Notes: generated by a model from the sequence alone, not told the origin. A DNA stretch of 64,000 bases from Ramazzottius varieornatus (GCA_001949185.1 BDGG01000012.1:1418973-1482972); one strand, 5' to 3'; shown: positions 42,876 through 51,500, numbered from the stretch's first letter. A program made the numbers and translations.

Positions 42876-43645
42876 TATGATGCTGAAAGCACGGTATTAC
42901 AATAGTAGCCAACGAGCTGCCCTTGTCGTCCACGACCTCAAGCACATAAACGATTGTCAGCCTACGCACAGGTACGTTTCGTGGTCCACATCCTGAATAA
43001 GCTTTCGAACTCCCGAAAATTGCACTCCTTATGATTATCCTTATGATGTTTGAAAGTTATCGACGCTGGCCTATTGAGTGTTGAGTCCGAAAATGTTGCG
43101 AAGGACACGGCGCGAAAGGGACAGGAAGTCTTACACGAAGAAAAGAGTTATAGCGATATGTTACCGCGGAATTTTAGCGAAGATTATATGCCTACTTCCT
43201 GTCGACAACTTTCAAGGGTCTTCCGAAATATTTTGTAATTTTGACAGTGTCAGTTTCCTGAAGAAATAGCTGACAAAGGTAACCTAACAATAGGTGCACT
43301 TGACCAGTACATCATACTCGGGCAAGCGAAGAGCTCGAGGAACCCAGACTGTAACAGACCGCTAGTCCGTCTGGCGCTCCGCAGATGGACGAATCGGATA
43401 CTGGTATTGTAAATATGATACCTTCACCGATGGCGTAATAAATATGATTAATGATAAACAGGCAGGTTGTGTGCGGAGTAAGCGCTGATCGATGGAGGCC
43501 CGCGTACAGGTATCGTGCGCACGCCCGAACAACGGCCCGGCACTGTTGACCAAGATTCTAGAAATACATGGGGAATATAAAGAAACGCGCTTAGTCCATT
43601 GCTCGACCAAATCTTATTTCGTCTGTGCTTTCTTCGTGACAGAAG

Positions 43646-43653
43646 TATAAAAG
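43646..43653 (+). promoter_or_regulatory. Candidate TATA box for CBM14 gene 1
   Basis: TATAAAAG about 190 bp upstream of ATG 43837. Confidence 0.45.
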
Positions 43654-43836
43654 CTTCCTGCTCTGAACTCTGTCGGAAGCTCGTATACCGCGTGGTTCAT
43701 CATTGTGTAACGTTCCTTGTTCCTTGGGTGGGCGACCGACAGTAGTGAAAGAGGGGTATCACCTATCGATGAGGAACTAACTGGTCCTTGTTCGCGGCCT
43801 CCGCGACGACTTCGTTTTGCTATTTGATACTGTGAT

Positions 43837-45512
43837 ATGGCGCGGACTGAAACTGTTATATTTTTCCTTCTTATTTCAACTTTCTGTGGGTCTGTGGTTA
43901 GGTCTCACGAACTGGTAAGTGCATACAAACTACTGTAACTGAAAACTTTTCCTTCCCAGTACTTCTCCTTTGGGAAACTTCTCTTCTGCAGAAAAAGCGA
44001 CAATCCGTAAATATTCAAAACCCACCAGTATGGCAAGCGTTGGATCTTCTTCGGGGTGGAGGAGAGCCACTGAATGCCGCGCAGGTCCAACAAGTCATGG
44101 CTTCCGCCGGTAAATTGGTCTTGACCCTAGCTGGCTCACTGTTCTGATGCAGTGTTCTATTAGTCTATAGAGAGCTTGAGCTAGTTGGTATGATCTATCA
44201 TCGTTGTTCCTTGCAGTACCGGGACAGAGCTATCCAACATTGGCATACATACCACAAACTTCTTTCACCTGCTCAAGCGCTAGACAACCGGGGTTCTACG
44301 CCGACCCGGAAACGGGATGCCAAGTCTTCAGACGCTGCGAGCAGAACAACTACATGTTCTCCTACATATGTCCGAACAGCACTGTAAGTTCGGCAGGAAC
44401 CCGCGAAAGTCGATAATTGTCGAGCTCTTTGGTACCTTCAAAACACACACCGTTAATCCGGCTCCATCTTTAGCTCTTCAACCAAATTACTCTCGTTTGC
44501 GACTACTGGTACAACGTGCAGTGCGACCGGTAAGGCTTCAAAATTTAGACAAAGGCTATAAAGCGCTTTTGTGACTGGTTTCAACCACGTTACTTTCTCA
44601 GACAGCTGGAAAATGTTCGCCGTTTGCAGGTCGCAACAGTTTGTCGATTACTCCAATCCCAGAATTTACATCCAGGGTGGTAAGTCCATCCCACTTCTTT
44701 TGTCCTCTGTTTCGCTCTGAGCCGGTCCGACCAGCCACCTGACAATATTACAACATCAGATTTAGTACAAAGTCTGTCTGGTAGTTCCGTTACTTGACGA
44801 TGTGAATAATGGATACGGAGGAGCTAGTGGCAACCTCATTGGTGGTGGTGGTGGTAACTACGCTTCCGGTGGTGGTGGCAACTATGCTCCCGGTAGCTCA
44901 CTGGGCGCTGGGCAAGCTGTTACCATCGGTGGCGGTGGTACATATTCAGGCGGCGGTGGCGGTAACCAGTACGATACCGGACGCGTCCAAAGCCAAGGAG
45001 GAAGAGGATCAAACTACCTACAGGGGCTGTCCGGCGGAAGTCTGTATAGTAGCGGGTCTTCGGGTTCTCAAGGCGGTGATTACAGCCGGGTACAAAGCGG
45101 AGCGTACAATACGATGCTAGGAACCAGCTCGTACTCTGCCGCGAACCAGCAGCAACAACAACAACAACTTCCCTTCGGAACGCTTGTCTCATCCTCCTAC
45201 GGTCCATCCCCACAGTCCCCATACCAAAGTCCCTCTTCGAGTGTTCAAGGCGGATATGCGCAACAGAACTACCAACAACCACAGCCGCAATTCCAACCGG
45301 CTTCTGGATATTCCTCACAGTACTCTTCACAACAGCAAAGAGCACCGTACTCTTCCGGTGTAATCCAACAGATCGGACCATCTTACAGAAGTTTATCTAA
45401 TCGACTTCTAAGGCTGCAAGCCGACGCTTCCGATATTTTCACTACAAAGACCGTCACTGATTCGACACCGAGTAGTACTAACGTTCTAAAGTCCTTTGAG
45501 CAATCTGGCTAA
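43837..45512 (+). CDS. Secreted chitin-binding (CBM14/peritrophin-A-type) cuticular protein with Gly/Tyr/Ser/Gln-rich tail
   Basis: Signal peptide MARTETVIFFLLISTFCGSV; YPTLAYIPQTSFTC..PGFYADPETGCQVFRRC..YICPNSTLFNQITLVCDYWYNVQC (6 Cys); last exon rich in GGG and QQQ. Confidence 0.9.
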
Positions 45513-46487
45513 ATCTTTTCTCGACACTTTTGGAACGAATGTGATGGTCCGGATTTGAGCTCACAAAAATCTGCTGTGAATTTTGATAGCTTTACAGCCA
45601 AAAGTGAATTGTAGCAAATTTGTGTTTTGACTGTGAAATCGTGTCGCCAGAAATAAATTCTTGTTTGTTCGTTGATCGGAAAGTTCAACAGTTTGGTAGT
45701 TTATCTCTTCTTGTCCAATCGTGATGGATCGCCGTTTCCTTGTAACCTTTCGTATGGGTAACCGGATCAGTGGACGAAACACGTCAAAATGTCTTCATGG
45801 AGCTTATTCTGAAACAAGAGAAAACAGATGAGCAAAGGAACGTATAATGCCTGCTCGACTACTGTCGGACTCTGCAGTCGGTGAACGCCTAAGTAGCCAA
45901 TGCTGACCTGCAGCTCGCGCGACATATCACAATATCTCAATGGTATTAATAACAGCGGCCCACGCTTACCCGCATGTTTTGTGTAGCGGCAGATCGATCT
46001 TGCTTTCTTGTCCTCTCGAGCAAACAAGACCGACAGCTCAGTGTTTTCCCGCTTTTTAAAAGTCAAATAGTTAGCGTCTGGTTAACGCGGAAGTACTAGT
46101 GTAGTCTACCTCTTCGAAAATACTTCACCTCGTCGACTGAGCTTCGCAATCTCCAGGACTTTGGTTCAGTACGTCCGAAGAGCCTAGTGGTTGGGGCTTT
46201 CCGTTTAACACAAAAAATACAGCTAGTACAAGTCGAACTACAGTACTTATCAAACAACTAAACTTCAAGCAAACGAAACCTCAAACCGCCCCTGCCAGAC
46301 ATCTGCCACGCTCAAAATAGACCAAATTTCAACGTAATGCGCAGTAAACTTAGTGGGAGCTACAATCCACACCAGAATTTACACAGCGAAGGTTAGGTTT
46401 GTAAGGAAAATACAAATGCAAATGAAAGAATTTTGGGTACCGTCTAAGAATCTCAGGGAACTGCAATACCAGTCACGTGAGCGAGAC

Positions 46488-47731
46488 TCAATCAGCGTCC
46501 TCCTCTTCTTCTTCCTCGTCGTCCCCCTCATCTTCGTCTTCCTCATCACCATGATTTGAGCCTCCTGACTGTTGTCTGGAAGCTTTATTCTCCTTGAGGT
46601 TTTCATTGTCGAACCTGTGACAGAAAAATCCAGTTTTAGTTTCCATCAACTCAAAATATGCTCGAACATGCGCGACCCTCCTCGCCCTAACCAGCGTCTG
46701 ACTTTCATTGGCGCCACTCCAAATCCTCTCGCAAGTTCATCCTTCTGTTGGGTAGTCGGGCGCTTATTAGCTGCCCAGTACGTTTTGAGGATGTCTATCT
46801 GCTCCGGCGTGAAGCGAACTGCCTTGCCCCTCGGTGCAACTCCAGGATAAGTCAGTGTTCCGCCTTGTTCAGCAGTGAGACGGTCCAGTCGCAGGAGCTC
46901 TCGAACCTGGGTCACACGTGGCATAGGTAAAACTTTCTGCACCTCCCGGAAGGCAGCAGGGCTCACGCTGTAGACTCGACACCCTGCAACTACCGATACC
47001 ATTCAGTTTCCATCATCATCATGACCAACATTACCCTTTATTGTGCTACACTAACCGAAATCGAGGACCGCAGGTGTGTATCTTCGCGCGAACTTCTTTT
47101 CGCATTTCTTGTCACATTTGTGCAACTTGATCAAGTCTTTAAGAAGGGAAGGGACTTCCGTGAGGAGGATGCTGTCGTTCTCCAGTAGTGTCTTTAATGC
47201 AGCCGAGTATTTTCGCTCTTTCAACAGTTCCGTCTGTAGCAACCTGATCTTCTTCGCACATCGATCTAGCTCACTCCGCATACGGCTAGGCTTTTCCAGG
47301 ATAGCCTTGACGGTGCTGGTCTTAGCCTTGGTTTTGCGATCCACTGGATGGTTTCTACTTTTATGGGCAGGAAGAGTCTGGTGCAGATGCATGCTAGTCG
47401 ATTTCTTGGTCTTAGAGATCGAGGAGTTGCCAACTTGACCGACCAGATTTTCTTGTGTAAGAGATGATTGTTCGATGGAATGAGAGGTATTCGATCCGGA
47501 AGGACTGGCAGCTAGTTGAGCAACAGGTAAAGCCGGAGACGAACCCAAAAGCACAGTCTGGAGTGGGACGGAAGTGCCAGCTATGTCGTTCACTTTCACA
47601 ACCGGAAGTTGACCACCCACACTGACAGAAGAGTAAGAAGGTACGTCAGGAAGAGCGATGGTGTGATGGGACGATGAAGAATATGGACTGCCTCTTATTT
47701 GATCCATTCCTGCTGTGTCTTGAGGATCCAT
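46488..47731 (-). CDS. Chimeric protein: coiled coil, P-element/THAP9-transposase-like HTH, divergent homeodomain, acidic tail (364 aa)
   Basis: Exons 47731-47056, 46983-46692, 46614-46488 (72- and 77-nt GT-AG introns; 1095 nt in frame). Splicing gives RRYTPAVLDFG|CRVYSVSPAAFREVQKVLPMPRVTQVRELL and RFTPEQIDILKTYWAANKRPTTQQKDELARGFGVAPMKVRRW|FDNENLKE..DEEDEDEGDDEEEEEEDAD*. Confidence 0.75.
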
Positions 47732-48554
47732 TCGTTCGGCTTGGGTGAATACCTAAGAAGAGCCAAACCACAGCGTCCCACGCCGCTCATAAACAACAGC
47801 AACGTACTACAATACTCCACGGCAGTCTGGCCGCAGGCGATCGAACAACATGCCGAGTCTTACTGTATTCCCAAGCTTGCTGCAGTGCTAGTGTTGAAAA
47901 CAAAGGCTCCTCGCCTCCTCCCTGGACTCGGTTGAGCTGGTGGGGATACTCGGAGTCTCAGACGAGAGAATGGGATTATATTAATGAGTTACATAAAGGA
48001 GAGCTAAGAGAAGTGCCAAAATGTTCCGAACTTCAGATTGAAGTTCATTGAAGCCCAAGGGTGGCAGGAGTGCACCAGGGGCGTTTGACGAAGGCTCATT
48101 TTGGTCAAGGGCTCATGGCGAAGCTCGTAGTGAAGCTCTTGACTCGCCAGGGCCGAACATGCACCGCAGTTTGCTTCCCTTATGGTGAGTCATATCGTCG
48201 GAAATCTCTCCTCTGAACCATGTAAGCTCGCGACGCACCGTCGTTTGAAACGTGCTGATCCGACACCGACGAAGCGACTTACCGGAAGCGGTTCAGACTT
48301 CAGAGTTTTTCCTTTGTCCAGATCATCTGTTGTCGTTCTTCCAGGAGGAATTGTTATCGCTCGACAGCGTTTGTTACCGGAGAGAAGGAGGCTGGGAGAC
48401 TGCACGCGTACTATAACAGCGCAGAAACCGCGCTGAGGATCCAAGGTATGTTGATGACAACTCTTGCGACATCGCCTACCTATGAACTGGTTAATGACTA
48501 GGACAGTTATCACTCCATGGTTTTGGTTCCAGAAAGCTCCCTTCGTCTTCAAGA

Positions 48555-51500
48555 ATGTCTCAATACAACTTCAAAAAGATAACGGTGGTTCCGTCGTCGA
48601 AGGTGAGAGAAACGCCATGGCAGAATCCACAATGAAGACGCGGACGACGGAATCGGTGGTTCGTCTTCGGTTTCCTAATGGTTGCCTAACGAGGTTTTGG
48701 CTGATGCAGGACTTTATCGACATCATCCTCTCGAAGACGCAACGGAAGACTCCAACAGTAGTTCATCGTCATTACCAGATTTCCCGTATCCGTAGCTTCT
48801 ATATGCGAAAAGTGAAGTTTTCCCAGCAGAGCTTCCATGATAAACTGTCTCAGATTATCCAAGACTTTCCAAAGCTGGAGGTTAGTACAGTTGACGTATT
48901 CTCAAATATTCTTGCTACACATAAGATGGTGGGAAGCATTTGAACATGGCTTCCGTGATCGCTGTAATGTAGGTTTGCCGTTTACTCCTAGGACATCCAT
49001 CCTTTCTATGCTGACTTGATAAACGTGCTTTACGATCGCGACCATTACAAGCTTGCGCTAGGCCAGATCAACATTGCCAGGAATCTTATTGACAAGTACG
49101 ATACATTTTAATCGTGTTCCACATTGTGAGCGTAATAGGTTGACTAACAATTTTTTGATTTCTAGTGTGGCCAAAGATTACTGTCGTTTGCTCAAGTACG
49201 GAGATTCACTCTACCGGTGTAAGCAGCTCAAGCGCGCAGCCCTTGGCAGGTAAGATTCATCTGGAGTAAAGTTATCCGGATAATTGAAATGTTGTCCAGT
49301 GGGCGCGCCTATTCTGTCCGGTCTTCCATCTGAGGGCTGGATTTGCTACCAGCGTGCAAAAGTAACTGAGTTAGCATACGTCAGTTTGGATGGTGGACAT
49401 TGTCTTTAACTTCGCGCTGACCCTACAATCCCTAATCACTCGTCGAAGAGTGACATGCTTATTTGTCTGTCGTAGAATGGCCACTATCATGAAGCGCCAG
49501 AATTCCAGCTTGTCATACCTAGAGCAGGTCCGACAACACCTGAGCAGACTGCCGAGCATCGACCCCAACACCCGAACACTTCTTATCACTGGATTCCCTA
49601 ACGTTGGAAAGTCCAGCTTCATCAACAAAGTCACGCGCGCCGATGTGGATGTGCAGCCGTACCCCTTCACGACAAAGTCTCTCTTTATCGGGCACATGGA
49701 CTACAAATACCTTAGGTGGCAGGTGAGTTCTGCGTTTCACTTATAGAATCAGAAACAGGGAGAATTTAATGGAGCAGCAAGTATCCTTGACTTCCGGATT
49801 TTCAAGTGTATAAAGTCTTCGTGGTTTTTGCAGGTGGTAGATACGCCCGGTATCCTGGATCAGCCGCTGGAAAACCGAAATACTATCGAGATGCAAGCTA
49901 TAACAGCGCTTGCTCATCTAAGAGCTGCAGTTTTGTACTTCATGGATATTTCCGGTCAGTGCGGCCATACTCTGGAAGAGCAGGTGAGCGGCGTTTGGGT
50001 TCCCACGTGTCTCCGGCCACAGCGCTGATACTGTTTGGTCTTGCAGGTTAGCCTCTTCACTAACATGAGACCTCTCTTCGCCAACAAGCCCCTCGTCATC
50101 GTCATCAACAAGATCGATATCCTGAAGTTCGAAGATCTGAATGAAGCCGAGCAGGTAAATATTTGGTCGATTGTGGACTCATTTTCCCCCTCGGCTTATG
50201 GATAATTGGATATCTGGGTGGATTAGTCACGTGTTGTTCTTATTTTAGGGGCTGATAAACTCCCTTCGGGCTGAGGAGACCATTATCTTGTTCATGAGCA
50301 CCATAACCGGTGAAGGTGTTATGGAAGTGAAGCAGGAAGCTTGCGACCTTCTGTTAGCTTCTCGAGTGGAAGCCAAGATGAAAAGCAAAAAGTCCAACGA
50401 TATCTTGAACCGTCTGCATGTCGCCGTGCCGCAGAAACGCGATGATAAGGTATGCTGTTATTTCCGCTGAGACGCTGAGAGCTTATCGAAGGAGCTGTTC
50501 AGTGTACCTGTCCAGCGGTGTACTCTAACGTAATTTACGGGCTTGCATTCTCTTAGTTTCTGATATAGCATGTGTGTTTTGGAAGGAGGATGCTAGCGTT
50601 ATCATGAAAAACAGTAGTTAACTATACAGTTCACCACGGTCATAAATTTCAACCTATCTTGAGAGTTGGGACTAAATTTTGAACGTTAGATATAAATTGG
50701 GGTACGTTTAGTTAATTGCCGTACTGTTCATCTTCTCAAGTGTCTGTTTTGTAGGAGCGTCCAGCTTTCATCCCGGAAGGCATCGTGAGGAAGCGCGAAG
50801 CTATGGATGTGGGTGAGGTGAAGCCAAAGAAGAAACTGGAAAGGGAGATTGAGTTGGAGCAGGAGGAAGAGTACTTCCTGGACCTGAAGAGTGAGTCTAA
50901 AGTAAGCACTCCATTCCGTGACGATTTTCACATATTGCTTGTTCGGTCGACAGAACGCTACTTCGACATTCCCGAGAAAGAACGCTGGGACACCATCCCG
51001 GAAGTGTGGAATGGTCATAACATTGCCGATTATATCGACCCGGAAATCTTCGAGGTTAGTAATTTCCTGCTTGCGAACGTTCTTACTGACCGAAATCGCA
51101 TTCTGTTGTTGTGCCTTCAGCGTCTGAAACAAATGGAAGAAGAGGAAGAGAAACGAGAGAAAGCTGGGGACTACGATGAAGACATGGAGGAGGACGATGA
51201 AGAGGAAGAGAAGATTCATGAAACGGCAAACGAGTAAGTTAACTTTCAGGCATATTGGGTTTGAGTACGAAGAATGAAGAAGGTTTCGGGTTATTATTAG
51301 CTGATGGTTTGACGAGCAGGAATTCTAATTGATCTTATTTACAGGATAAGAAGACGCAAAGCAGTGTTGCACGAGGAAGCTCGAGTAAACAGGAGCACCA
51401 AGCCTAGAATGGCTCGCGAACATGGACGAAAGCGAGAACGCAGCGAGAGTAACCTCCGAAGTAAGATGGAAGATTTGGGCATCGATGGTGAGGAACTGTC

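Follow-up and report, generated by a model that had tools for sequence, protein, structure and literature searches.

RvY_15910, a single locus of the tardigrade Ramazzottius varieornatus, is probably a single-copy host gene for a transcription-factor-like protein of transposase descent, in which a coiled coil and an HTH of the P-element/THAP9 type are joined to an atypical homeodomain. The locus lies in a window of 64,000 nucleotides (contig 12, 1418973-1482972), by which we mean the whole stretch of DNA that was analysed. Most likely, RvY_15910 belongs to a kind of gene that is already known, namely the host-transposase fusion transcription factors. Public records label it 'hypothetical' or 'homeobox domain-containing', and its precomputed Pfam annotation gives the homeodomain alone; in the literature, we found no paper that names either the RvY_15910 locus tag or the coiled coil-HTH-homeodomain architecture.

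RvY_15910 is encoded on the minus strand by three exons in one frame, separated by GT-AG introns, as read directly from the DNA and checked with a script. The features of the locus, in the order in which the gene is read and with positions counted from the first nucleotide of the window, are:

47732 to 48554, unstranded: divergent intergenic region of 823 bp, common to RvY_15910 and NOG1.
47056 to 47731, minus strand: exon 1, with the ATG at 47731; 225 codons, identical to residues 1-225 of RvY_15910, and the initial base of the Gly226 codon; encodes a disordered Ser/Thr/Pro-rich N-terminus, followed by the coiled coil and the N-terminal half of the HTH.
47183 to 47290, minus strand: coiled coil/leucine zipper, residues 148-183 (AlphaFold helix 148-171; predicted in-register dimer contacts).
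46874 to 47176, minus strand, intron 1 included: probable P-element/THAP9-type HTH domain, residues 186-262 (Pfam, ESM Atlas, BLASTP, hhalign, HMM and MAFFT).
46984 to 47055, minus strand: intron 1, 72 nt, GTTAGT...GCAG, phase 1, within the HTH domain.
46692 to 46983, minus strand: exon 2, with the remaining half of the HTH, a linker and the part of the homeodomain that ends two bases into the W48 codon.
46578 to 46834, minus strand, intron 2 included: atypical homeodomain, residues 276-335 (Pfam, PDB search, AlphaFold and script).
46615 to 46691, minus strand: intron 2, 77 nt, GTTAGG...ACAG, phase 2, within the W48 codon.
46488 to 46614, minus strand: exon 3, with the remainder of homeodomain helix 3 (F49 D50 N51 E52 N53...), the acidic tail and the TGA at 46488-46490.
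46491 to 46547, minus strand: acidic C-terminal tail, residues 346-364, all D or E except one G and one A.

The translations of the three exons are identical, residue for residue, to residues 1-225, 227-322 and 324-364 of the public 364-residue RvY_15910 record, and the two split codons, G/GG and TG/G (slashes mark the introns), encode Gly226 and Trp323, the latter being W48 of the homeodomain. Left unspliced, exon 1 reaches a stop one codon past donor 1 and exon 2 continues for 14 unrelated residues past donor 2 before it reaches a stop; splicing of intron 2 exactly restores the W48-F49-x-N51 motif. The preliminary description of this DNA, made from the sequence alone, had proposed an intact spliced gene with introns of 72 and 77 nt, a 364-residue frame and no frameshifts, and this is what we find: the exon pieces match the annotated RvY_15910 exactly, and 364 codons are open over three exons with canonical splice sites. 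The N-terminal 140 residues of the protein are rich in Ser, Thr and Pro, are modelled as disordered and contain no cysteine pattern.

The gene lies in a compact, gene-dense region. As proposed, it stands head to head with NOG1: the ATG of NOG1 is at 48555 on the plus strand and that of RvY_15910 is at 47731, giving a measured ATG-to-ATG distance of 823 bp where about 820 bp had been stated. NOG1 (nucleolar GTP-binding protein 1; 48555-49746, plus strand) starts with MSQYNFKKI..., has its first intron directly after ...VVPSSK, and was confirmed to contain the Pfam domains NOG1_N and MMR_HSR1. Between RvY_15910 and its next neighbour, the plus strand holds a Gly/Ser/Gln-rich open frame of 236 residues at 44802-45512.

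For all searches with the whole protein, the public 364-residue record of RvY_15910 was used as the query rather than exons that we had joined ourselves. The Pfam Homeodomain profile (PF00046) matched residues 281-331 over profile positions 5-55 of 57 with 34.6 bits (E 1.7e-8), above its gathering cut-off of 22.9 bits, and exon 2 alone also passed the profile (24.6 bits, E 2.2e-5). In a PDB sequence search, the best solved relatives of this domain were ISL1 and DUX4 (E about 5e-6). AlphaFold modelled residues 281-335 with a pLDDT of about 90 and placed three helices at 285-298, 303-313 and 317-339. The homeodomain landmarks F8, Q12, L16, W20, P26 and L34 correspond to residues 283, 287, 291, 295, 301 and 309, and A35, V45, W48, F49 and N51 to residues 310, 320, 323, 324 and 326, i.e. 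with the exact spacing of a 60-residue, three-helix domain in which W48, F49 and N51 (W323, F324 and N326) lie in helix 3. Thus, the helix-3 motif restored by intron 2 and the landmark spacing are both as proposed in the preliminary description, as is the order of a divergent homeodomain followed by a D/E tail. We conclude that residues 276-335 of RvY_15910 are a true but atypical homeodomain.

What makes this homeodomain atypical is its recognition helix. In DNA-binding homeodomains, R53, which contacts the DNA backbone, is nearly invariant and residue 50 is not acidic; instead of a basic helix with these properties, RvY_15910 has D50, E52 and N53. Because of these three residues and the missing R53, we treat DNA binding by the homeodomain as uncertain and perhaps poor. 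Judged from these residues, the substitutions argue for atypical or weak DNA binding and leave the homeodomain fold unchallenged.

Upstream of the homeodomain, the preliminary description had placed an HTH resembling that of P-element transposases and THAP9, around RRYTPAVLDFG and directly after a coiled coil. The coiled coil was found as proposed: the helix at 148-171 is followed by the HTH from residue 186, and both hhalign and MAFFT matched this helical segment to the coiled coil of THAP9-like proteins. The HTH assignment was supported, with one reservation. Pfam PF12017 (Tnp_P_element) aligned over nearly its whole length (profile positions 5-71 of 73) with residues 186-253, the segment around RRYTPAVLDFG/CRVYSVSPAAF; its score of 15.7 bits (E 0.02), however, falls below the gathering cut-off of 23 bits, so that of the two profiles named in the preliminary description for a HMMER check, the homeodomain profile exceeded its cut-off and the P-element profile did not.

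Searches of other kinds pointed to the same family. In a feature search of the ESM Atlas, based on a language model and performed with residues 145-265, three PF12017 clusters came first with a score of 0.93 and up to 201 of 256 features, and PF12017 was the family on which 8 of the 10 best family-bearing matches agreed. The Atlas structure search likewise placed PF12017/PF21787/THAP clusters in rows 1-3, at a TM of just 0.48-0.52 and with a model pLDDT of 0.56; without an alignment, AlphaFold modelled residues 140-279 below pLDDT 50. A PDB sequence search with RvY_15910 returned homeodomains only and no P-element transposase.

The R. varieornatus genome itself offers a reference for comparison. 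Its sole THAP9-like gene, present in a single copy on contig 11 (1440356-1443523, plus strand, local about 1087-2913), contains a coiled coil, a PF12017 HTH (33 bits) and, after it, the RNase H N-domain PF21787 (E 1.9e-25), and has relatives that are 52-65% identical in environmental assemblies (P0153-P0158). Instead of being an active element, this gene may itself be a THAP9 homologue that has been domesticated. By BLASTP, residues 169-247 of RvY_15910 matched the HTH open reading frame of the contig-11 gene in register with E 6e-4. We aligned the contig-11 gene with four of the environmental relatives and built an HMM from the coiled-coil and HTH columns of these five THAP9-like sequences. 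This HMM matched residues 168-261 of RvY_15910 with 13.3 bits (p 3.6e-6), while the best other segment in the window gave 7 bits and none of 20,000 shuffles of the RvY_15910 region reached 13 bits. An hhalign comparison of the same five sequences with RvY_15910 and its paralogue on contig 7, described below, gave P 4e-4 with a probability of 35% and spanned the coiled coil as well as the HTH. Finally, in a MAFFT alignment of all seven sequences, in which the RNase H part of the THAP9-like sequences is misaligned onto the homeodomain, Y218, S233, A236, L244 and P247 are invariant.

A search of the R. varieornatus genome with RvY_15910 identified one distant paralogue on the minus strand of contig 7 (1652397-1652711). 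This gene (contig 7 1650897-1654211, minus strand, local about 2452-873) repeats the architecture of RvY_15910: its coiled coil and P-type HTH precede a homeodomain, which has E50 and K51. It was searched exon by exon. A coiled coil lies at the end of its exon 1. Over the region that runs from the HTH core through the linker to the homeodomain, exon 2 (local 1842-1508) is 31% identical to RvY_15910 (E 4e-9), and it matches Pfam Homeodomain with 36 bits, above the cut-off. With the THAP9-like HMM, the same exon scored 13.5 bits (p 3e-6), and again 0 of 20,000 shuffles reached 13 bits; moreover, the HTH of the paralogue matched the THAP9-like gene in register by BLASTP (E 1e-3), and a separate Atlas search with its HTH segment placed PF12017 clusters first, at 0.93.

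The homeodomain of the paralogue is interrupted by a phase-2 intron within the W48 codon (TG/G), at the same position and in the same phase as in RvY_15910; the first introns of the two genes are at different positions. The identities between the two proteins concentrate on the cores of the HTH and the homeodomain, and both domains therefore appear to have been kept since an old duplication. Altogether, the 31% identity, the core residues and the intron position would imply long purifying selection on the family after that duplication. Read by eye, the paralogue seemingly continues into a second homeodomain, ...W/FENRRRK, again split within the W48 codon; this reading involves pieces too short for a Pfam match. 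Such a second homeodomain would make the contig-7 gene a double-homeobox version of the RvY_15910 family. An acidic residue occupies position 50 in each of the three homeodomains, i.e. that of RvY_15910, the first of the paralogue and the putative second of the paralogue as read by eye.

No third member of the family was found in the R. varieornatus genome, a weak match on contig 13 being left aside. Two other weak matches were rejected as chance, one on contig 17, which is acetyl-CoA carboxylase, and one on contig 15, where no gene-like frame is present. In addition, contig 4 (1435162-1438323, plus strand, local about 1444-1912) contains a canonical ANTP-class homeobox gene reading ...SQIKIW/FQNKRAKLKK. 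Since this gene also seems to have an intron at W48/F49, R. varieornatus does not confine that intron position to the fusion family.

These data bear on the possibility that RvY_15910 is an ordinary, lineage-specific and fast-evolving homeobox gene, whose likeness to the P-element HTH arose by chance or convergence with no transposase involved. The PF12017 score under the curated cut-off, the low hhalign probability and the lack of a P-element transposase among the PDB sequence matches are what such a gene would give, and short helical domains readily produce weak matches. We nevertheless regard this explanation as unlikely, given that five partly independent tests led to the same family, the same residues and the same register, that the contig-7 paralogue repeated the result on its own with no shuffle reaching the HMM score, and that the preceding coiled coil also aligns with the transposase coiled coil. 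In total, the sequence comparisons support that residues 186-262 of RvY_15910 are very probably homologous to the P/THAP9 HTH and too diverged for the Pfam threshold. The domain is thus probably of the P-element/THAP9 type and derived from that domain, without certified membership of PF12017.

Outside the genome of R. varieornatus, the combination of domains did not recur in our searches. Queried with exon 1 and with residues 145-335, a word index gave no protein other than RvY_15910 itself. Exhaustive HMMER searching of 1.84 billion representatives gave 196 matches with E values of 0.001 or less, each of them owed to the homeodomain, and in the best 150 of these 196 no HTH was found, either by a renewed search with residues 140-270 or with a motif pattern. 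Similarly, two metagenome scans for the architecture found nothing. An ortholog with a divergence like that of the contig-7 paralogue would score about 26 bits, too low for the threshold of the 1.84-billion search, and distant tardigrade orthologues could therefore escape it. Several of the top HMMER matches are tandem multi-homeodomain predictions or ZFHX-like proteins. Six proteins from environmental assemblies (P0002, P0004, P0005 and P0007-P0009) contain 6 to 13 tandem homeodomain matches, each protein being one open frame that fills its short contig; P0002, for example, has 1666 residues on an ENA contig of 5333 bases.

The lack of an ortholog in the word-index, 1.84-billion-representative and metagenome searches, together with a recognition helix that has no R53 and has gained acidic residues, could mean that the RvY_15910 model describes a silent or decaying gene, a remnant whose frame is open by chance. 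We consider this quite unlikely: 364 codons are open over three exons with canonical splice sites and an exactly restored WF.N motif, a paralogue at 31% identity keeps the core residues of both domains as well as the intron position, and the gene sits in a compact, gene-dense setting 823 bp from NOG1. Altogether, these observations are consistent with an expressed gene.

The preliminary description had also stated that the THAP finger and the catalytic core are absent and that no terminal inverted repeats (TIRs) are present, and in these respects it proved correct. In RvY_15910, Pfam gave no match to the THAP finger (PF05485) at E up to 10 and none to the RNase H, GTP-binding and C-terminal transposase domains (PF21787, PF21788 and PF21789). 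No meaningful TIRs were present in 43500-50500, which covers about 3 kb on each side of the gene. The copy-number check suggested there gave one DNA copy of the 2.1-kb locus in the genome, and at the protein level RvY_15910 is likewise single-copy apart from the one distant paralogue. Because it is single-copy and has neither TIRs nor THAP or RNase H domains, RvY_15910 is not a transposon; that it forms part of an active or dead P-element-like transposon, as the likeness to a transposase HTH might suggest, is extremely improbable given these findings and the position of the genome's one THAP9-like locus on another contig.

RvY_15910 thus combines, in one spliced frame at a single-copy locus, a probably transposase-derived part with a host domain, which is what defines a host-transposase fusion. 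The preliminary description had called the gene a domesticated transposase-host fusion transcription factor; the fusion is supported by the gene structure, the domain tests and the single copy, whereas domestication and action as a transcription factor are what we infer from them.

Through its coiled coil, RvY_15910 may act as a dimer. In a two-copy complex prediction, residues 140-268 formed a parallel in-register dimer with a score of 0.50, compared with 0.00 for the best of 3 controls. The predicted contacts are 155:155, 162:162, 165:165, 169:169, 172:172, 176:176 and 179:179; at least 91% of contacts were shared between runs, and the pLDDT of the partner was at least 75. In calibration, 21 of 30 proteins solved as one-chain pairs attained the mark for a dimer, as against 0 of 23 single-chain structures; for eukaryotic proteins the numbers were 17 of 29 (animals, 7 of 16), and just 1 of 7 for those without an older solved relative. 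Being a model, the prediction supports dimerisation of residues 140-268 of RvY_15910 and stops short of showing it.

P-element transposase has the domain order THAP, coiled coil, HTH, RNase H with an inserted GBD, and CTD (PMC7776569). The coiled coil and HTH of RvY_15910 would correspond to the second and third of its six domains, with the order kept and the HTH aligned near full length, and the pattern (R/K)Y ... S-x-A-A-(Y/F) ... L-x-x-P is common to RvY_15910 and the THAP9-like gene of the tardigrade. By contrast with P-element transposase and THAP9, RvY_15910 lacks the THAP zinc finger, the RNase H core, the GTP-binding insertion and TIRs, is single-copy, scores below the PF12017 cut-off and has a homeodomain where the catalytic core would be.

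RvY_15910 may also be compared with the fusion genes of vertebrates, in which putative transcription factors likewise unite a host domain with the DNA-binding part of a transposase. RvY_15910 differs from these in being a tardigrade gene and in what it retains, which is not the THAP domain but the coiled coil with the HTH. Among host-transposase fusions of tetrapods, the P element/Kolobok superfamily supplies 21.3% of events (10.1101/2020.05.07.082677). The same paper on transposase capture (Cosby et al.; 10.1101/2020.05.07.082677) contains the words 'homeodomain' and 'homeobox' 0 times and mentions no homeodomain partner.

Two further groups of homeodomain proteins resemble RvY_15910 in part. 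As in POU and HNF1 proteins, a first helical DNA-binding domain is followed by a flexible linker and a homeodomain, with a dimerisation element as in HNF1; however, there is no sequence relation, and the whole of RvY_15910 gave no POU or HNF1 Pfam match. DUX/ZFHX-type homeodomains are among the best matches to the homeodomain of RvY_15910, and the paralogue, with its putative second homeodomain read by eye, recalls the double arrangement; these proteins, however, are without a coiled coil or P-type HTH, and the likeness is at the general homeodomain level of about 27-33% identity.

The closest parallel in architecture is Pax, in which a paired domain, thought to be derived from a Tc1/mariner-type transposase, is joined to a homeodomain. 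In both cases, a single chain would carry an HTH of transposase origin ahead of its homeodomain, and duplication would have followed the fusion (an idea discussed for Pax in 10.1101/2020.05.07.082677). The two differ in that the donor superfamily of RvY_15910 would be P/THAP9 rather than Tc1/mariner and in that RvY_15910 has a coiled coil; moreover, Pax is found across animals, whereas RvY_15910 was found, as far as our searches reach, in one tardigrade, and its homeodomain is atypical (D50, E52 and N53). By analogy, RvY_15910 can be regarded as a small-scale, functional parallel to the presumed origin of Pax.

In the most likely history, the N-terminal module of a transposase would have been captured beside homeobox exons, whereas its THAP finger, its catalytic core of RNase H and GTP-binding parts and the ends of the transposon are gone, and the fused gene would later have been duplicated to give the second copy on contig 7. 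The protein would pair through the coiled coil and present two separate DNA-contact modules per chain, as in POU, Pax and HNF1 proteins, and the acidic tail might serve as an activating or autoinhibitory segment. Because the recognition helix of the homeodomain has D50, E52 and N53, the HTH is probably the main reader of sequence. Most likely, therefore, RvY_15910 would act as a dimeric DNA-binding regulator with the HTH as its main reader.

The recruitment of transposase DNA-binding domains into transcription factors is a known route to new regulators, and Pax, the classic example with a homeodomain, is too old for its steps to be traced. In RvY_15910, a homeodomain protein would have received its module for dimerisation and its HTH from a transposase superfamily other than that of Pax, P/THAP9, and the genome in which this took place is small and compact and retains one THAP9-like gene for comparison. 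It is conceivable, although we advance it only tentatively, that RvY_15910 and its paralogue found a tardigrade-restricted homeobox class that arose by capture of this module, that they are dimeric two-module factors in which the HTH still reads scattered sequences like P-element ends, and that they represent a young and traceable replay of the origin proposed for Pax. If RvY_15910 is expressed and binds DNA, it would be a tractable case of the assembly of a bipartite homeodomain factor and would enlarge the homeobox set of tardigrades by one class.
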